NCBI GenBank assembly: GCA_904063045.1
Contig: CAJFCJ010000003.1
Coordinates: forward strand, 2,714,504-2,778,503
DNA length: 64,000 nucleotides
Source: Dimorphilus gyrociliatus
Taxonomy: Eukaryota; Animalia; Annelida
Direction of reading: 5' to 3'
In this document: positions 1,792-44,102 of the stretch, piece after piece
Numbering within the stretch: the first letter of the stretch is position 1
Layout: each line of letters begins with the position of its first letter
Notes under the pieces: model-generated
What the model saw: only the letters and a program-made list of their open reading frames with translations
What the model was told of the DNA's origin: nothing
Databases searched by the model: none
Made by a program: the position numbers and the translations under genes

Positions 1792-4700
1792 TTTAAATTA
1801 AGATAAAAGATATCTGTATGCCGATACAATATAAATGTATTCATTCTGAAATTAACCAAGTTAATTTACCTTGATAAATTGCTTATAATTCAATATTCCC
1901 TCTCACAATTTCTATTTCTATCTCTTTCCTCAGTCTTTCCAATACTCTATATTGCTTATTTTTATGGAAAATATTCTATAGAATGGTTGGTTTCTTTTAA
2001 AGAAAAATAAAGAATATGAAAAAAAAATAATGCTTTTGGCTAAATTATCAAAAATTGATAAGTGTCTTCTTCGTTTGCCTTTATAACCCCACGAATTAAT
2101 TCCATTAAATTCTCAATAGACTATTTGGACATTTCCTAAAGTAGGATATAATTTTAGAATTTACGTTTCAAGTGTTGAATTATTTATTATTTAAAGAAGA
2201 TTCAAAAGAATTAAAAAGGTTCCCATCTTTACTCTTTCTAACTGTCTCATAAATAAACTTTTTTATAGTTGTAGGGCGACGTCTAATGTCTATTGACAAT
2301 TAATATTTGTAATAAAAGGTTACGACGCCCAAATGTGTAAAAGAAAAAGTTGTAATAGTGCAAAAATTTGACGTTTCGTCATCTTTCTCATTTTTTTTAC
2401 TCACGACAAACAATAGAAAAGCGGGGAAACCGATTTATCAACAAGATGAAAAGCACGTCACTAGATGAATGAGAACGATATCTTGGAAAGAAGCTGCTGC
2501 CTGCAAGCCTTGCCTAAACCATCCTAACGAGGCTGATCGAGGCACGTGACAAACTAGCATACAAAGGAATAGCAAAATAGGATGGAAAGTGAGAGAAGTG
2601 TGGGATGAGAGGTTTAACGATTCAGGAAAAGAAATCTTACTTTATCAGAGTTTTAATAATCGGACGTGTGTTAAAGGGCGGACTGTTGGTGAATTAGGCA
2701 GCATTCTTTAGCTAACCGAATCTATTTGCCGCGGACGACAAAGCTTATAAATGTCAGGCGCTAATGAGTTGACGTCTTGATATTTAAAGTCATAAAAATA
2801 ACAGCAAAGCCCCAACTGCATCCAGAATATTTTATTCTCTCTCTCCCCCTTTCAACCTTATCCTTCAACCTAATCGTCTACTTTATAAACTACTAAAGAA
2901 AATTTTTCCTATGTTTCCTCTATATCTTGAGAAATTCAACCATAAAAAAATAAAATTTACATTCTCTTCTTCTCTCATTCCCCTCTATCTTGCCATCAAT
3001 TTAGTCCATTTTTTTATACTTTATCTTCTCATTCAATTTACTTCCGATTGATAATAAAAAAAAGAAGACTATAGTGGAAAATCAAAGAGATAAAGGAAAT
3101 TTGAAGAATAAGGAGTCAGGAACGGGCGAAGGGGTGAGATGTAGGAGCGTAAAATAAAAAAAGAATAACTGTAGTTTATAGGCTTACCGTAAAAAAAAAA
3201 GGAAAAAAAAAGGGGAATCCCTCTCCATCCTTTTCCAAACTAATACTGAAAGATTGCATAGTTACACACTGAAATCCGTTTTTGTCGGTTACTGTCGTAC
3301 AGTCTTATTATTAGTTGAACAAACTTGGATGGCACATTTCCAAAAAAAAGAAAATGGCCTATGCTTCTCAGTCAAGTGAGAAAATTTGATTCACAATTAC
3401 ATCATATTCAAAATAAAGAGGTCAAAGCAATCTTTAAAAAACTATCGATAATTCTCTTCCCCTTCCAAGCTTACTAATGAATACGATATATACTTACGTA
3501 GTATAATTGGACATAGATCGTAATTCTTTTTTTCTGCTTTTTTTTTTTAATAGATTGAGAATTTCGTCCCTTGGCTTTCTGGATTTCGAAACATTGAATA
3601 AGTAAATTCCTTCCCATCAATGGCATAAATTATGAGTTTTGTTGCTTTTAAGGTTTTAGGCCTACAACTGGTACAGGTATTTATATGAAATCGATAAGGG
3701 AATGAAAATTCGACCTACCCTCCCTTTCCCCAGTCGCGTGCTGTGGCAAGATTTATAAAGAGAAAAGTTGGGACCTAGGGGAATTTTGGTAGCGCTATTG
3801 GAGGACAAAAACTATTCTTTTCCCACCAACCACCTGACCGTGTCGACGGTGTTACTCTGTGACATTTTACTGAAATCTTAGTACACAATTGATTCTCTTT
3901 TAAGTAATTTTTCATATATGATAATAGTCTCCGTTCGATTTCATTACGAAAAAGATTTCTATAAAATTAAAGATGAAAAGGAACGTCAAAGAGTGAAGAA
4001 TGTAAAAGCAACTTCTATTTCTCAGATGATGATCATTTTTATATGAAAAAAATGACTGTAAATGATATGGAATATAAATGTATTTTGAAGAAATAGAAGA
4101 ATGTAGACTATAGCAGATTGAATTGAGGATAAAAGCGTTAACTCATATGTTAAATGCTTGAACAGTATTTAAAAAAAAATTAGATTCCAAAGCGAATACA
4201 ATGATATCAACTGATCATTATTTCTAGTAAACACAGCTGTATTTGTTAAGCTGTCTGAGTCTTTATAATTTAAACGGTTTTTTTCATCGCCCGTTTTAAT
4301 GAAAAAACAACAAAGTGATGATAAGTTAATATTTTTTTTTTAAAAAAAACAAAAAAAACAACAAAATCGGGTCTAACCGACTGACAATTTAAAATTAGTC
4401 ACGTAGAACAGTTAATAATAATTTCTTGGAGCTGTATGAAACGTGCGTAATAGGCCTAAAACAAGCGATAACTTTCCGGGTATGAGTGACCTTGTAGCAT
4501 AAGTAGTGGTACCTTGGGGCAAAGAGGGATTTTTAGATTTCTCTTCTGAAGCGTGAGACTCCCTGTTTGCCAAATATGGCAACGGTATCCCAATATTATA
4601 TATATATATACTGTATATATAATTTGTCGTTCCTAGCTGCTAAGAATTAACCTAAAGTAAAAGACAAGTTCAAATTTTATAAATCAGCTAAAGTTGGTTC

Positions 4701-33837: not shown

Positions 33838-36800
33838 CTAAATTGTGCATTTATCGACTCCAGCACCGTCTAAAGCTTCCTTTGATAAATTTAACGTATT
33901 AAATACACCAGGTTCAACGGCAATTCGAACTTGATATAAGCATCCATTTAATCCAGTTTTAAACAACTGCTTAGTAGATAAGCTAACCCTTTCTCTGTCT
34001 CCTCCTATATAGTTTATAGAATATTTTTAATTGAAAATATTTATGATCAATATTTTATTATAATTTACCAAAGATGACTGGCGAATTATCAGCAAAATTG
34101 ATACTTTCCCCTGAATAAACACCTTGGAATCTTGTTGTTCGCCCTGAAGTCTCAGTCAATTCAAGTGATATAGCTTGACTATATCTTTAACGAATATATA
34201 GTATACAGTACAATTATATATACTTAATAAAAGTATATGTTCTACTTACTTAGAGACTGTAATTTGAATAAACCGTCCGATTTCAATACTAATATTAGTA
34301 GAAATAGAAGCGGCACCATTGTTTAGTTTAGATCTACAAAATTTAATAAAAGTTATCTTCAATTGTGTTTACAATCGATCAGTATATTTAACTGACCGAA
34401 ATATTATCTTTCTCTCCTTTATTCCTAAAGCTATATATTCTTTATCAATTCTACCTCTCCACATTATCAATTGATCTTCTCTACTATTTGTCTTAAATAT
34501 TATTTCAACAGCGGAATGAGTTGTCCTGAAAGTAGCCAATTCTTAGTTTACCTTTAAATAGACTAAGGGTCTGTTAATTTTTAAAATTTGTCTTACCCAA
34601 ATATATTATTCTTATATGCTAGAAATCCATAACCATTCATTGAAATAATATTAGATGCAGACATTGCTGTATATGTGTTGAAAGCTACAGTTTTCAGTGT
34701 ATTTGTGTAAAGTATACAAACCCAATTCGCATTTTTCACCAGTAAATCCAAGGGGACATCTACACCATGGCTTTGAATTTATGGTTATACAAACTCCTTT
34801 ATTTGAACAAGGTTTTGAGCAATCTGAATTTAGGCAAAGACTCCCTAATCGTCCAACTGGACATACGCATTCATAGCCATTCTCAAATTTTAAACACTGG
34901 GCAGAAGAATGGCATAGGTTCTCATCACAGCCTTTTGTAGGGCAATTCGTTACACCACGTCCTTTCCTGACAGCTTGGCGATTATCATTCAGTTTAATGT
35001 TTCTAAAGCATCCATTAAATCCTTAATAAAGTACAAGTATTCTAAATATAAAAATATGTCCTAGATATTGATCTAACATTTACCCTTTCCAGCGCTATCT
35101 TTTTCTAATTCCGGGAAACTGTGTAATTTTGGTACTCCTCCAAAGAATACAGGAAATTTAGGTGTAAATAATGATATATCGAATCTATAAATAGTATTCT
35201 GCAAATTCAGCACTGATAATAATAGATAATAGAACAAACCTTTTCTTTAAATCTATATATCCTCTAACGATAGCTGTTATGCTAGTATTATCGAACAAAA
35301 TATTAATATATAACCAAGAATTTAAGCGAATATTTTGAATATCGGTCGACCAAACTTGATTTTCATTGAATAACTTTAAACTAAGTAAATCTGCCCTCAA
35401 TAAACCAACTAAAAATAGTTATTTTTACATAATAAATTTAGCATCTTTTGATTAAATAAAAAATACTAACCAAAGTAATTTTTACTTGTACCAAAAAACA
35501 AAAGAATTCCATTCGCCTGTTCAGGTTTTATCTCGAATGATATTTCTGTTTTAATATTGATTATAACATTTTCAATTTCAATATATCCTCCCCCTGAAAG
35601 TCTTGGTGTGTCTATTGTTGTTCTTGTACTGCAATCGCTTCCGATAAAACCAATATTGCATATACATTCACTTTGTGTTTTACCATTGAATTGGCAAGTA
35701 CCACTGACACAATTGATATTACAAGGACGATTCGAACAGGTGTTTATTGATTGAGAAGTAATAAATTTTGATTCATCCAACGATGCCCAATTGTTTTCAA
35801 GACTAACCTAAAAAAATTTGATGATATGTTAAATAGAGAATCAACAATTAATAATAATTAATCAAAAAGAAAATAGTAATTACATATATATTACTAATGC
35901 AGCCTTCTAAACCATTAATTAACGGCAAACTCTTTAAAATTTGATGATCATAGGCCTGATAACCGCCTATATAACATTCTAATTTTTTGGCCAAGAGCGT
36001 TTCTAGTCCCGGAGTTTGACCTTGTACTTCGATAAGATCATTTAAGTATATAATTAAAAGTTTTTTCTCCTTAACAACTTTTAATTTTAGAAAAGTATTT
36101 AATGGTAAAAGATTCCTTCCCTGTAAATTTATTGGACCAGGACCTATTTAAATGAAAGAAATCAAAGTTAGGAGATTGTAAAGATTTAATTAATCACAAT
36201 TAATTATATAATACTTATATTATTATTATCTATGTCATATCTCAAGATTAATGATACTAATCTATTAAACTATTAAAAATAAAAATATTGACAATACCTA
36301 AGTTCATTGACGCTATTAGGTATCGATTACTAACACCAAACACCAAATAACTCTTTTCTAAATCTCCTGCAAGTGCGATAAGGCCAGATGACGATGATAT
36401 TTGAAAATCCATTTCCATAGCAAAATTGTTAACATTATCGTTCGTAATGGAAAAGCTCATAAAACTATTTCCAGTAAGAGATGGATTAAAATTTGACGTT
36501 GCCACTGATAAATAATAATAATAATAATGCATTCCAAACGTTTTACTTTTAAACTATGATATATACCTGTTGAGCAATTTTTTCCAATGTACGTTGAAGG
36601 ACATACGCAAAGATAAGCACCACCTGATCCAGGTTTACAAGAACCTCTTAAACAAGGTGAATTATCGCATATGGATTTTTCACAAAAAACTCCGCTATAA
36701 CCATCTTTACAATTGCATCTAAACGACGTTGGGGACAAGTTCACACACACTCCATTGTTCTGACAATTTACATTATCGCATGCTCTTATGAGAATAGAGC

Positions 36801-39800
36801 AAGTAAAGCCAGTGTAATCCGATGGACAAATACATCTATCCAAAGGCTAAATATATTAATATATTTCAATAAAAATCGCAAACGTACTTAAGTCCACTAT
36901 TATTATTTTGGCATGTTGAGCCATTCTCACAAGGATTATTCTCACCGCAATAATCTTTTAGTTGACATTCATTACCATAATAAAAATTTGAACAAAGGCA
37001 AGTATATTGTGTCCCGGCCAAGTTGTTAGGTAATGGTAAACACGTTCCCAAATTTTTACAAGGTTTATGACCACAACGATCCACTTCTGCACAATTTGTT
37101 CCCTTAAACCCAATTGCACATGCGCATCTGTATATAAATATGCAAATATAATTATATTAGTATATATTAAAGATATTATGTAAATTAAATTGAAAGTACA
37201 AGTAGAAATTAAATATCTACTTAAAAGAATTAACACCATCTATGCATGTTCCACCATTTTTACACTTTTCCCCTTGAAGGCATTCATTTATCTCTAATTC
37301 ACAAAGTTTTCCAGTAAAGCCTATACAAAAGACATTTTTTCGGGTTTTTATTAAACAAAGAAATTTTAATTAACCAACCTTTCATACAATTACAACTATA
37401 ACTTGTCACAGTTTCCAGGCAAGTAGCGTTATTTTTACATGGAGTTGAATAGCAAGCGGGAAGTGAATTTTCACATTGACTACCCGTAAATCCTGGTTTA
37501 CAGATGCAATAAGAAGAATCGTCTATTCTTCTTTTGCAAACTCCATTATTTTTACATCTCGTACTAGCTATATATTTTTTAAGTATTATAACAATTTTCC
37601 CTAAAGAGAATTATATATTCTATTTATTTACCGAAACATGGATCAACATTTTGGCAATTTCTTCCCAGAAAACCAGGAGGACAGTTGCAACTATAGTTTC
37701 CCGCATCATTTGAATTTACAATACATTCACCACCATTGCATGGATTCACAGGGGAGCATGGATTAGGTTTAGTAATTTGACATTTATCGCCCTATTTTAT
37801 ATCAGTTGAGTTATAATTTGATTGTTTCTTTCGTAAATTCTTACCGTAAATCCAGATTTACAATCACAAAAAACCTGATTTCTCAATAACCAACAAGTTC
37901 CACCATTGAAACAGGTTTGAGGTTTACACAAATCCCTTTTAATTTGACAAAATAAACCTTCAAAGTCGTTCGAGCATGAGCAGAATACGCCAATTGAATC
38001 TGAATAACAAGTACCCCCATTTTGACAAATTGACGGAGAACATGTTTTTATCTCCTCGGCGCAGAAATCCCCAGCATAAGGTGGTTGACAAGCGCAAAAA
38101 ATCCTGTTTCCATTAACCAAGCATCTTCCGCCATTTCTACATGGTTGTGAATTGCATAAAGATGGATTTGTTTCACAACGCTGACCTTCAAAAGGTTTTG
38201 GGCAATTGCATGTAAAACTATCAACTCCAACCTGAATACATGTCCCAGAATTGTAACAGGGATTAGGATTACACGAGGAAATCAACTTTTCGCATCTCTT
38301 CCCTTCAAAATATTCCGAACAGTTGCACCTATGTAAGATTCCTTCTAGAAGATAACACTACGACAATGAATAGAAAAAAAAAGTAACCCACTTAAAATCA
38401 TTATCTCCAATATTTTCACAAAATCGAGGATTATTGAGGCAAGGTTTTGCATCACACGGTGGCTGTTTATCAGAGCACGTTAATCCTATTAATTGATGGA
38501 AAACATTTACTGTTTACTATAAAATACTATTAAATAGAAGAAAATTTATACCCTTAAATCCAATGTTACATTGGCATTGAGAATTCTGACAATTTCCATT
38601 GAAACACGTATCTTTATCGCAAACTAATGGAGTACTGCAATTTTTACCAGTAAATTTAGGTTTACATGAACAAGAATAATCAGCACCATTTGCTAGATTA
38701 ATACATTCACCAAATTTACAAGGTTTGGTTAAACAGGAATATTTTTTATCACAAAGTAATCCAGTAAAGTTTGATGGACAAGAACAAGTAAATGAATTAC
38801 CAATATTTCTGCAAGTAGCTCCATTCTTACAAGGTGAACTACCGCAAGGTATTGGAATTTGACAAAATTGACCTCCCCAAAGTTGAGTACAATTACATCT
38901 ATTAAAGGTTTATATTTATGTGAAGGTAGTTAAAAATTATTAAATTGAATATATAAAACTTACGAAAATGACGATTCATGATTTATGCATTTGCCACCAT
39001 TTTTACAGGGTGTGCTTGAACAGTAGTTATATTGAGAACAATCTTTACCAATAAACGCTGATGTACATTGACAACTATAATCCAAATCTTTTTTTTGGCA
39101 TTTTCCACCATTTTTACATGGTTTTAATAAACATCTATTGATATCGCTGCATCTTTGTCCAACGTAGGGCGGTGTGCAATTACACTATTATTGGGTATAA
39201 AAAAAATAAAACGAAGGTATACTTAGTTTTTAGCTACGCATAATTTTATCTACATGTACTCCAGATAATGCAATAATCCCTGTTATCACCATCTGTTACA
39301 CTTATGGCACGTGAAGAGAAAAAAAGCTTGGATCAAACATAGGACTGATAAGGTCGAAGACTTGAGTATAAGTATGATAAATTGTGCTGACAAACTTGCT
39401 TTTAATTAGTTTAGGTCAAACTAACGTCTTGAAAGGAATGTTAGAATGGAAAACGAATGGAATATTAATAAATCATACGCTTTCATTCAAGATTCTGATT
39501 ATACGTCGGGACGTCGTTATTTTTTCACTTTTTTTAGTCAATTTGGTCCTCGTTCAGTATCAACTATAGTCATTGAATTATTCTTTTTATTCTTTATCAA
39601 ATTCTTAGGATTTTCATTAAATATCTTTCATTTTGTCGTTCTTTGGAAGCATAGAAAGCCTGCTTCGGTAAGCATAATTCTGGAAATGAATCTCTGCTTT
39701 TCAAGCTTTCTTGGTTGTGTTCCGTTAATCTTAATTTCTATTACAAGAATATATAAAAGATGGATTTTTCATCAATTCTTTTGTAGTTTTTTAGTATTTG

Positions 39801-42800
39801 GGATTTTCCTTTGCTATTGCTTTACTGCTTGGATTTTAACTGCGATTGTAGTTGATCGTTCAAGGTTTGTAAGAAGAAAAATGGGTGGACGTTTACCATT
39901 AAGTTTTAAGTGGTCGAAGAGAATGGTTTCTATAATCTGGATAATGGGTGTTGTTGGAACATCTCCAATGGGAATATTTTTTAGGAACAAATCAGTTCTG
40001 ATCAACGAAAGAGAGTTAACAATTTGCACTTTAATATGGCCAAAAACTGCAATAGGTGTCAGTTTATTAATAGTAATAGTTACTGTAACCGTTACCATGT
40101 TACTTCCTCTAGTAATAATCATCTATAGCTATGCAAGAATTATCAACGTACTAAAGAAATTAAGGAAGAGAAATCGAGAAGTTCTTACTGATTTTCAGCA
40201 AGCCCAACATATGAAAGAAAAGATTATGGCTAAACTATTATTAGCTATGATATTGAGCTTCTTTTTAACTTGGATACCAATATTTTCATTATTTTTTGTT
40301 CTGCTTTACGATTCTATTACTCAGAAATTATTAGCAACTTCAGTATTGATGGTTGTTACTACTTTAATAGCCCTATCTAATTCCATATCAATACCATTAA
40401 TTTATGGAAGTTTAACTGGAAAATTCAAATTAAAAAGATTGACTGAAGCAGTCCAGTTTATACATTCTAAAATAAGGAATATACGAAAAGATGGTAGAAA
40501 GATAAGCAATGTTATAAGTAGTTCCTCTCAGAGTTGAATAATCAATAGAAATATAAATATGAACTTACCCTAAAAGAACTTGAGCCGAGAGGTTCGCATA
40601 CTCCAGAATTAAAGCATGGATTATTTTGGCAAATTCTTGCAATTCCACAATCCTTTCCAACGAATTCTGATAGGCAGTTGCACTCGTAATCGTCAGAACC
40701 TTTAGGTCTTTTATGAATAGAAGATACGTGTTTTAAAAGTATATATATATATATATATATACGAAAATTATGAATAAAAAATAAATTTCAACCTGCATGT
40801 TCCTCCATTTTTACACGGCTGAACAACGCACGGTATATAACTTGAGCAATCCTTACCAGAGTAACCCTTAAGACATTCACAAGCATAGTCGTTTTGTCCA
40901 ACATTTAAGCATTTTCCATTATTTTTACAAGGTGACGAACTACACTTTAATGTTATTTCGCATTGTCGACCGGAAACATTAGGTTTACATTGACAGATGT
41001 AAAATGGTTCTTTGGAGGATTCAATACAAAATCCATCATTCTTACACGGTGTAGAAGAACAGTATAAAAATTTTTCACAATTGACACCTTCAATTTTGAA
41101 ACATTTTCTTTGTATTATGTAATACTCAAGTGTACGTAACTACCTGTATAATTTGAATGGCATTTACATTCAAAATCGTCACCTTTTGAGGTGCATGTAC
41201 CTCCATTAGAGCAAGGGTTACCGGCACATGAAAGGAATTTTTCACACCTTGAGCCAGTGTAATTTGTGGGACAAGTACAAAAGAATTTATTGTCTTTTAC
41301 TGAACAACTTCCTCTCAAACAAGGCAAACTTAGGCATGGGTCGTAATCTTCGCAACGATTTCCTTTATAGTTTTGGGGACATTTACAACTAGAAAACGGA
41401 AATAACTATTTAATTACTTCGAAATAAAATCATGCATGTCTGTTACCTATATTTTGAATCCTCCTTTACACATTTTCCATTGTTCAAGCATGGTTTCAAG
41501 GAGCAAGAATCAAATAAATCGCAATAAGTTCCGTAATAATTAGATTTACATTTACATTCGAAATTTTTACCATTAGCAATACAGTCTCCATTACTACAGG
41601 GGGAACTAGCACAGGGTTCTGCAGCTTCACAATTTCGTCCTTAAAAAACATATCATTCCAATTCAATATTAATCATTCATTTTGGATGATTAATACCTTG
41701 AAAATTTATTGGACATGTACACAAGTAATCGTTAGCTATTTGATTACAAATTCCTCTATTTTTACATGGATTGGGAGCACATGGATCAATTCTTCTTTCG
41801 CAAACATTTCCTTTTAAAAATCAATTAATCAATTAGTAAGTATATTTTTTTAACTGAATATATAGTTCTTATTTAAACAGAATATATATATATATATAAA
41901 CTATATTGGATTATAGTTATAGTAGTAATGTGTATCAATTTTTCAACCTGTAAATCCATGGTTACAATAGCATTGAAATTCATTGGGTTTCAAATTAGGG
42001 TTGCAAAATGGAACTCCCAATTTACAGCATAAACCACCATTCTTACAAGGAGAAGATGAACATGGATCTATCTCTATTTCACATTGAGATCCAGTAAAAT
42101 GTTCAGAACATTGACATTCAAATTTTCCAGGTAAATTTAGACAAGTTCCTCCTAAAATTTTAATACGTCGTTAAATAAAAAATGTTTTTCATTCTATTGT
42201 CAGTGTCATACCATTCTTGCATGGTTTCACAGCGCATTCGTCTGAATCAATTTGACATAATGAACCAGAAAATCCAGGTAAACAGAGACAAAAATGACGA
42301 TTTCCAGTAATACTAGGTGGAAAGCAGATGCCATAATTCCGGCAAGGGTCATCTGCAGGAGAGGCGATAGAGTATAGTAAGAATTTATGGTAAATTATCC
42401 ACATCAAATAGTTAGTATTATAATGATCTACTTGATAGCATACAGTATATATAGTATGTATTCAACTTATGAATGTACAGTCCCTCCCTTTAGTCCCATC
42501 TTTTCTTAAAGTACATCATTCCCTCCTTCTATCTCCCTATTACTATTCCAAGAATTTGTAAATATATTCAGCCTTTCTAAAAAAATCTACAATATGGCAT
42601 TTTTGTGTTCGTTGATAAAGTATGACTATTAATGACTATTACCTTGAACACAGAATTGATTCCTTTCACACCTTTGTCCAGCATATTGTTTAGGGCAATT
42701 ACATTTAAAAGTTTCTTTCTCTTCGACGCAGGAACCTCTGAGACAAGGATTCGATTCACAAGCTGTTAATTTTGATTCACACCTTAAACCTACAAATAGA

Positions 42801-44102
42801 AGAGATTTCTTTCACCCTATATATATATATATTTGTATAAAGAATTAAAACACCTTTAAAACCCGGTTTGCAATTGCAAGTATAACTACCGATCTGGTTA
42901 ATGCAAGTTCCACTATTAAGGCAGGGATTACTAGTACACTCATTTATGTCATTTTCGCACTGACGACCATAATAACCGTTTGAACAGGAGCACTTATAAG
43001 TTCTTCCAGAAGTATTATCAGTATTCTTTATGAAATAAAAATGACGATCATGTCAAAAATATCAATTATTATTTTCTTTTATATATAACAAAATTTACCT
43101 TCTGAAAAACTTACTTGACAATTTGCTCCGTTTAAACACGGTTTAGAATCACATGGTTTTAAGCCAGTTTCGCATTTTTTCCCACCAAAACCCGGTCTAC
43201 ATGAACAATGGAATGTGCCCCTTAATGGTGTACAAACTCCGTTCAAACATGGATTAGGATTACAAGACGATGGGTCAACTGTTGGTCTTATAGTAGGCCT
43301 AATACTTGTTTGCTGTGTTTTTAGTTAAAACCATACGAAAAATTTATATTAAAAAATCAGATTAAATACAAAGCTAAATAAAACTAATTAACTAATTACC
43401 TGATTAATTACTGTTTGAGTGAAAGACTCAGACGTCAAATCATTCTGAACAGTTGTGAAAGTATTCGTTAATTTAGTTGTTTTATCAGGTACAACAGATG
43501 TAAAATTAAATGGATCCTCCTGTTTAATATCACAAAGTTCGCCTCTCCAAGAAGGTGGACATTTGCATCTATAATAGGCGACTCTAATGTGCTGAGTGTA
43601 TTTGAAAGGAACGCAAGTTCCACCGTTCTTGCAATTGTGATTCACACAAGGATCTCCTATAATAGAAAATAATTTAAATTAATATAATAAGATAAGAATT
43701 AAAAATATTTTTTACTTACCTCCTCTACACGTTGCCGCGCTTTCATCGGCTCCTGTTTTACAATCTTTAGATCCATCACATAACCAAATTCCTAGAATAC
43801 AATCACTCGGATTGGTTGGATTTCCGCAAAATACTTGATAAATTGGCGGAACACTAGGACAGTTTTGTGGTAAAGGTTCTGCATTAAAAAAAAACTTAAA
43901 TAAATATTTTTAATAGATTTCTCTGAAAATAAGTTATATATAAAATATTAATTTATATGGTTGCCTTAGCAACAGAATTCCTATTTTTTTTCTTAATTAA
44001 AATATTCTTTTAATCTAAATTTTTTTAAATTACAACGAACTCACGAATATCGGCTGAAATAATGCTAATAATGCAAAACACAAAACTAATCAGAAGAAGC
44101 AT
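33838..44102 (-). CDS. Large secreted LDLa - EGF(n) - LamG protein, eyes shut/spacemaker (EYS)-like
   Basis: Signal peptide [17 protein letters not shown] (44102). LDLa exon ~43880-43720 ([20 protein letters not shown]). About 35 consecutive EGF repeats counted by eye from 43.65 to 36.57 kb, then LamG-EGF-LamG-EGF-EGF-LamG. Ends ..[20 protein letters not shown] at 33838 with no TM segment. Confidence 0.85.
39446..40537 (+). CDS. Intronless class A GPCR, FFAR4/GPR120 (long-chain fatty acid receptor)-like, nested antisense in an intron of the EYS-like gene
   Basis: 363-aa single ORF with seven hydrophobic segments. [10 protein letters not shown] resembles FFAR4 RTRFPFFSDV; [10 protein letters not shown] resembles EISICTLIWP; SFFLTWIPI resembles SFFIMWSPI. 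DRS sits at the DRY position. Comparison made against the human FFAR4 sequence from memory. Confidence 0.85.
   Translation: MENEWNINKSYAFIQDSDYTSGRRYFFTFFSQFGPRSVSTIVIELFFLFFIKFLGFSLNIFHFVVLWKHRKPASVSIILEMNLCFSSFLGCVPLILISITRIYKRWIFHQFFCSFLVFGIFLCYCFTAWILTAIVVDRSRFVRRKMGGRLPLSFKWSKRMVSIIWIMGVVGTSPMGIFFRNKSVLINERELTICTLIWPKTAIGVSLLIVIVTVTVTMLLPLVIIIYSYARIINVLKKLRKRNREVLTDFQQAQHMKEKIMAKLLLAMILSFFLTWIPIFSLFFVLLYDSITQKLLATSVLMVVTTLIALSNSISIPLIYGSLTGKFKLKRLTEAVQFIHSKIRNIRKDGRKISNVISSSSQS

Follow-up and report, generated by a model that had tools for sequence, protein, structure and literature searches.

A divergent, fast-evolving FFAR4-family receptor gene of the annelid Dimorphilus gyrociliatus and its probable lid-clamp arginine

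The window analyzed here, a stretch of 64,000 nucleotides from the annelid Dimorphilus gyrociliatus (G000:C3:2714504-2778503 of a 77.9-Mb assembly; the published genome is of 73.8 Mb; PMC7854359), is AT-rich, with about 30% G+C, and carries an open reading frame (ORF) for a class A G-protein-coupled receptor (GPCR). The gene is a new, divergent and fast-evolving annelid member of the FFAR4 family (for free fatty acid receptor 4, also GPR120), which databases and a paper on the oyster had already extended to invertebrates (see below). The ORF starts with an ATG, is preceded by an in-frame stop 12 codons upstream, and matches Pfam 7tm_1 over residues 59-320 (E 8e-29). We consider it likely that this FFAR4-family receptor has kept the lid-clamp module of its human counterpart, that its ligand is a lipid, and that the arginine singled out in the original prediction, which had been made from the sequence alone, is a structural clamp of the lid.

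Among solved structures, the best match of the ORF was human FFAR4 (69.4 bits, E 3.6e-18), followed by AT1R (55.3 bits), and a profile built from the ORF and the seven non-chordate relatives closest to it also placed FFAR4 first (169 bits; NPY2R, 149). An AlphaFold2 model, obtained from a 58-row family alignment (pLDDT 89, pTM 0.85), has seven helices followed by helix 8, a confident N-terminal hairpin and a hairpin in the second extracellular loop (ECL2); when the model was compared with the PDB using Foldseek, the top four matches were FFAR4 complexes, with TM-scores by target of 0.86-0.89. FFAR4 came first in the solved-structure sequence, clade-profile and fold searches by 14-24 bits, and human or vertebrate FFAR4 (PDB 8ID3, 8H4L and 8T3Q, among others) is the closest known system on each of these counts, although the identity between the human protein (361 residues, against 363 for the ORF) and the ORF is only about 23-27%. 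The amidated-peptide receptors (NPY/NPFF/CCK/tachykinin/somatostatin) were next-best in every search and share with the ORF the general class A architecture and the ECL2 hairpin.

A word-index protein search returned only P0001, an orthologue described below; an exhaustive search of representative sequences was then used and gave 965 relatives, with the N-terminus and the ECL2 motif common to the top fifty or so. The relative from Lingula anatina is named "free fatty acid receptor 4" at its source, and those from Tubulanus polymorphus, Argonauta hians, Branchiostoma lanceolatum, Lethenteron, Saccostrea, Crassostrea gigas and Pecten maximus are named "free fatty acid receptor 4-like"; family members from Dreissena and the centipede Strigamia carry no source name. 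The family clearly predates the vertebrates and includes proteins from a brachiopod, a nemertean, molluscs, a centipede and amphioxus. A family hidden Markov model (HMM) built without the ORF and P0001 gave the ORF 245.8 bits, against 182.7 for an outgroup HMM, a margin of 63 bits. In the reciprocal direction, which the original prediction had proposed as a check, guinea-pig FFAR4 returned the ORF as its best match in the D. gyrociliatus genome, by a modest margin of 8.6 bits (68.6 against 60.0 for the next locus), and P0005 also found the ORF first (123 bits; next, 108). The runner-up loci are most like GPR83, Kiss1R and somatostatin receptor proteins, and these genome searches revealed no second FFAR4-like gene.

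A careful maximum-likelihood (ML) tree (IQ-TREE, LG+C20) was built from 82 rows, 58 of them FFAR4-like and 24 outgroups, including rows named as Kiss1R, somatostatin, SIFamide, RYamide/NPY and GPR83 types. The outgroups split from the FFAR4-like rows at 100/100, amphioxus and vertebrate FFAR4 form one clade (99/92), and the ORF and P0001 lie within a clade of eight rows (88/93), itself within a protostome clade of 46 rows (88/93). P0002-P0006 and P0008 belong to the nearest clade. The same ML-tree clade holds the RefSeq protostome proteins named FFAR4 or FFAR4-like from Lingula (XP_013397220), Tubulanus (XP_074641161), Argonauta (GAB1607746), Crassostrea, Saccostrea and Pecten, which share with the ORF the patterns N-x-S-Y ... 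FT[FY]FS[EQ]F, TR....W and CTL.WP and a single-exon coding region, at identities of 25-31% and E values down to 1e-34; the C. gigas FFAR4-like protein (P0181; 25% identity, E 1e-32) has the N-terminal, TR....W and CTL.WP motifs. These relatives differ from the ORF in their branch length (about 0.8, against 2.0) and in having, in many cases, Gln or Glu at position 3.32, where the ORF has Ile. With FFAR4 best by sequence, profile and fold, the nesting in the ML tree and the HMM margin, the earlier assignment to an FFAR4-type receptor is supported.

The motifs quoted in support of that assignment, FTFFS, RIYKRW, DRS, ICTLIWP, SFFLTWIPI and IPLIY, are all present at the expected coordinates (Table 1), and three of the stretches, at the N-terminus, in ECL2 and in the sixth transmembrane helix (TM6), had been taken as distinctive of FFAR4. 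This was examined in 57 FFAR4-like and 64 peptide-receptor-like rows from the same search. The N-terminal pattern F.[FY][FYWH][SGTN] was present in 41/57 and 0/64 rows, respectively, [TV]R....W in 40/57 and 2/64, and C[TS]L.WP in 28/57 and 1/64, whereas the TM6 pattern F..W.P, found in 9/57 and 8/64, is generic. By these counts the N-terminal, R....W and ECL2 motifs are diagnostic of the FFAR4-like family and the TM6 motif is not, so that the claim of distinctiveness stands for F.FFS and ICTLIWP, absent and rare, respectively, in the outgroups, but not for TM6. Moreover, Arg occupies position 2.64 in 54 of the 56 family rows and Glu occupies position 1.35 in 48 of the 56; in the 64 outgroups, neither residue ranks among the five commonest of its own column.

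The Arg of the RIYKRW motif had been said to keep the spacing of human R99, and it does: HMMER aligns R101 with R99 and W106 with W104, the spacing holds from both ends (19 residues on from N2.45 and five residues before the Trp of the first extracellular loop, ECL1), and both R101 and W106 are at least 90% conserved in the 58 rows. A pairwise HMMER reading with a two-residue insertion before the Arg and a Phe in place of D2.50 was dropped; the multiple alignments have no indel and a Ser at 2.50, and the pairwise gap is an artefact because the TM2 proline is shifted.

What this Arg does is a different matter. It had been credited with binding the carboxylate of the fatty acid, a role that the cryo-electron microscopy (cryo-EM) of the human receptor contradicts: Zhang and co-authors describe R99(2.64) as making no contact with the ligand and as bonding instead to D30, E43(1.35) and F304(7.36); it stabilizes an aromatic network (F25, F27, F28, F115 and F303), the lid over a hydrophobic pocket, and the carboxyl group of the agonist has no specific interaction with FFA4 (PMC10780892). 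The conserved Arg thus argues for a conserved lid, and not for a conserved carboxylate site. In that light, F.FFS, R....W and the ECL2 motif can be seen as parts of one lid module, which is retained in the ORF (F27, F29, F30, E44, R101, W106 and W198) and family-wide. Human FFAR4 and the ORF have in common the F-x-F-F-S lid, E1.35, R2.64, the ECL1 Trp and an identical ICTLIWP, as well as F6.44, W6.48, P6.50, I6.51 and L6.59, but human D30 is a Gln in the ORF. In contrast, the N-terminal aromatic lid is absent from all 64 peptide-receptor rows, and the ORF lacks the Q3.32, present in about half of the sampled amidated-peptide receptors, and the D2.50 of those receptors.

In the mechanism that we favor, the E1.35-R2.64 pair would clamp the N-terminal F-x-F-F lid, with the ECL1 Trp and the C-T-L-x-W-P hairpin of ECL2 kept, and the Arg would hold the lid structurally rather than anchor a carboxylate. 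A hydrophobic ligand, be it a long-chain fatty acid or some other lipid, would occupy a near-wholly apolar pocket beneath the lid and would move the W6.48/F6.44 switch. Among the class A microswitches, W6.48, P6.50, R3.50, Y5.58 and Y7.53 are retained, but D2.50, the Tyr of DRY and N7.49 are gone; the D2.50, N7.49 and ERM of human FFAR4 are Ser, Ile and DRS in the ORF. With these three residues gone, activation may be altered and the downstream coupling is probably atypical. In the comparison with the protostome FFAR4(-like) relatives, the loss of N7.49 and of the DRY Tyr is restricted to the ORF and P0001. Gly, Ala or Ser likewise stands in place of D2.50 in the nearest clade, in roughly half of the brachiopod/nemertean-type rows and in one unnamed clade of six rows; D2.50 is retained in the chordate, mollusc-type and arthropod-type family members.

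The missing microswitch residues bear on whether the gene works at all. P0001, 77% identical to the ORF, was recovered from run SRR23372231, on a Logan contig (locus L004) that looks genomic in that it carries introns of a host gene, and it occupies the same position in a host intron as the ORF does (see below). Between the two, the ratio of nonsynonymous to synonymous substitution rates (dN/dS) is 0.11, at a near-saturated dS of about 1.4, and the odd residues S87, DRS and I316 are common to both. This indicates a gene that is intact and under purifying selection and, in view of so low a dN/dS against a 77%-identical orthologue, presumably working though fast-evolving. That the ORF is a decaying or non-functional receptor relic, as the loss of three canonical class A residues might suggest, is hardly credible: the ORF is intact in both species, which conserve the very residues that look odd, the AlphaFold2 model is confident, and even in human FFAR4 the DRY is replaced by ERM. 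A pseudogene was rejected on the dN/dS. Several observations, in the tree and in the pocket, do weigh against the reading of the ORF as a lipid receptor of the FFAR4 family. The stem of the ORF and P0001 is very long (2.0 substitutions per site), a first, quick tree of 122 rows had the two as sister to a 51-row family clade, and an approximately unbiased (AU) test does not reject a grouping of the other 56 rows to the exclusion of the ORF and P0001 (dlnL 7.0, p 0.27), which in the unrooted tree corresponds to the branch joining family and outgroups. The careful tree sets the peptide-receptor outgroups apart, at 100/100, but the AU result leaves room for a position just outside the family, and together with the quick tree and the long branch it speaks for an orphan class A lineage there, its motifs being retained from an ancestor or convergent. 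Nevertheless, E1.35, R2.64, the lid and CTLxWP, all shared with the family, are rare or absent in the sampled outgroups, and three independent lines favor membership, namely the 63-bit HMM margin, the characters shared with the subclade (NINKSY and the loss of D2.50), and the loss of the ORF lineage in all other sampled animals that a sister position would need. We regard an orphan lineage as very improbable.

The pocket raises a more serious doubt. Only 5 of the 14 docosahexaenoic acid (DHA) contacts listed for the human receptor (PMC10780892) are identical in the ORF, the N-terminal F27 (F27N), W198, W6.48, I6.51 and L6.59. Two human aromatic residues are replaced by small or polar ones, F2.53 by Gly and F5.42 by Thr; elsewhere the changes are mostly to aliphatic residues, in that F3.29 is replaced by V117, M3.32 by I120, T3.33 by F121, W5.38 by I209, I6.55 by F283, I6.58 by L286 and F7.35 by M302, and outside the listed contacts the activation-triad residue F5.47 has become M218 and F7.36, the partner of R99, V303. 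The aromatic deep pocket for DHA and TUG-891 is thus not kept in the ORF. Other protostome members preserve it poorly as well, so that it is a hallmark of the vertebrate receptor and not of the family. Furthermore, position 3.32 is Gln or Glu in 31 of 49 protostome-side rows, as in amidated-peptide receptors (Gln in 31 of the 64 outgroup rows), and Met, Leu or Ile in chordate FFAR4, a pattern which hints that the class of ligand may differ within the FFAR4-like family. A hydrophobic residue at 3.32 is also found in some mollusc-type members. As far as can be judged from such alignments, the fatty-acid sensing originally predicted does not follow from the family assignment. The receptor could be a true family member and yet not a fatty-acid sensor, the protostome branch binding an amidated peptide or another lipid mediator and fatty-acid sensing being a chordate innovation; the residues at 3.32, the poor conservation outside chordates of F3.29, W5.38, F5.42 and F7.36, which contact DHA in the human receptor, and the fact that the nearest families are all peptide receptors speak in its favor. 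We think this unlikely, but clearly less so than an orphan lineage. The ORF has I120 at 3.32 and an almost entirely apolar pocket, its substitutions being mostly hydrophobic (V117, I120, F121, I209, M218, F283, L286, M302 and V303), and such a pocket would fit a lipid better than a peptide; in addition, the lid apparatus that shields the hydrophobic pocket of human FFAR4 is conserved family-wide. An FFAR4-family receptor with a clamped lid and a lipid ligand is accordingly the reading that we retain as the probable one.

The features of the locus are collected in Table 1. A large multi-EGF gene on the minus strand (window positions 34654-43909) has the GPCR gene nested antisense in one of its introns, which measures about 1.6 kb. 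Pfam detects EGF domains in those exons of the host that were sampled, as well as an LDL-receptor class A domain at 43715-43909. The nesting is kept in the related species that carries P0001, where L004:1607-1828 and 3445-3741 are exons of the host gene.

Table 1. Features of the FFAR4-family gene and of its flanks, in window coordinates.
Feature	Positions	Strand	Basis
FFAR4-family class A GPCR, complete single-exon coding sequence (363 residues and stop)	39446-40537	+	ORF, Pfam, PDB match, ML tree, dN/dS
NINKSY, with an N-terminal N-x-S sequon; common to the nearest clade and the oyster FFAR4-like protein	39461-39478	+	Alignment; BLASTP against P0181
FTFFS (F27-T-F29-F30-S31), counterpart of the human F25-P-F27-F28-S29 aromatic lid	39524-39538	+	Alignment; lid role from PMC10780892
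E44 (E1.35), partner of R2.64 in human FFAR4	39575-39577	+	Alignment
S87 at 2.50; class A sodium-site Asp lost (Gly or Ala in the nearest clade)	39704-39706	+	Alignment
RIYKRW; R101 is R2.64 (human R99), W106 the ECL1 Trp (human W104)	39746-39763	+	HMMER, alignment
I120 at 3.32	39803-39805	+	Family alignment
DRS in place of DRY (human FFAR4, ERM; most protostome relatives, D/E-R-Y)	39854-39862	+	Alignment
ECL2 ICTLIWP, identical to human 193-199; contains the disulfide Cys and the DHA-contacting W198	40022-40042	+	HMMER, alignment
TM6 SFFLTWIPI, with F6.44, W6.48, P6.50 and I6.51; generic class A toggle region	40256-40282	+	Alignment
IPLIY in place of NPxxY; N7.49 to Ile, only here and in the 77%-identical orthologue	40391-40405	+	Alignment
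EGF-repeat exon of the host gene, one flank of the GPCR gene	38963-39184	-	Pfam
EGF-repeat exon of the same host gene, opposite flank of the GPCR gene	40771-41139	-	Pfam

Two further observations concern the FFAR4-like family at large. A separate clade of five rows (100/99), formed by P0035, P0051 (Owenia fusiformis), P0148, P0037 (Sinanodonta woodiana) and P0057, lies inside the FFAR4-like superclade; its source-named rows are from one annelid and one bivalve. It keeps R2.64 and, for the most part, E1.35 and the CxLxWP region, has Thr at 7.36 and Ser at 6.55, and resembles an uncharacterized paralogue group, of which no member was found in the D. gyrociliatus genome. In the zebra mussel, Dreissena polymorpha, P0010 and P0155-P0160 (DPMN_067032 to DPMN_067042) represent a series of FFAR4-like genes and gene fragments with consecutive numbers on a single chromosome, as if the family had expanded there by local tandem duplication.

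The original prediction had remarked that FFAR4 is mostly treated in the vertebrate context. Invertebrate members are not new: RefSeq already names many invertebrate proteins FFAR4 or FFAR4-like, and an oyster FFAR4 paper appeared in 2020 (Li et al., ACS Omega 5:21355; cited in PMC12995623). Our search of the literature for invertebrate FFAR4 found no paper beyond that citation, and no report of a ligand for a protostome FFAR4-like receptor was found in the literature searched, in which the 2020 oyster paper itself was not covered. The oyster receptor is reportedly linked, by the title of that paper, to nutritional control, a point against a protostome branch that does not sense fatty acids; P0181 could not be confirmed as the protein concerned. 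In the Dimorphilus genome paper GPCRs were classified by Drosophila orthology (PMC7854359), and in a study of fatty-acid taste in Drosophila BLAST gave no homologue of GPR40 or GPR120 in the fly (PMC5747521), which is perhaps why the gene has so far gone unremarked.

As an annotation, the gene had been correctly spotted but is unremarkable. A speculative and rather doubtful extension would be that a bilaterian FFAR4-like family is defined by the lid-clamp module (F-x-F-F, E1.35, R2.64 and CTLxWP) and not by a fatty-acid pocket, and that a hydrophobic residue at 3.32 and lipid sensing evolved on separate occasions, in the chordates and in a small number of protostome lines, that of Dimorphilus among them. 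If so, the Dimorphilus receptor, from which the sodium-site residues D2.50 and N7.49 are gone as well, would amount to a natural experiment of its own, in which a peptide-type receptor was made into a sensor of lipids. Of some value are, first, the placing of the Arg in a family-wide lid clamp, rather than in a carboxylate site, which changes which mutants would be informative, and, second, the difference of the protostome pockets from that of the human receptor.

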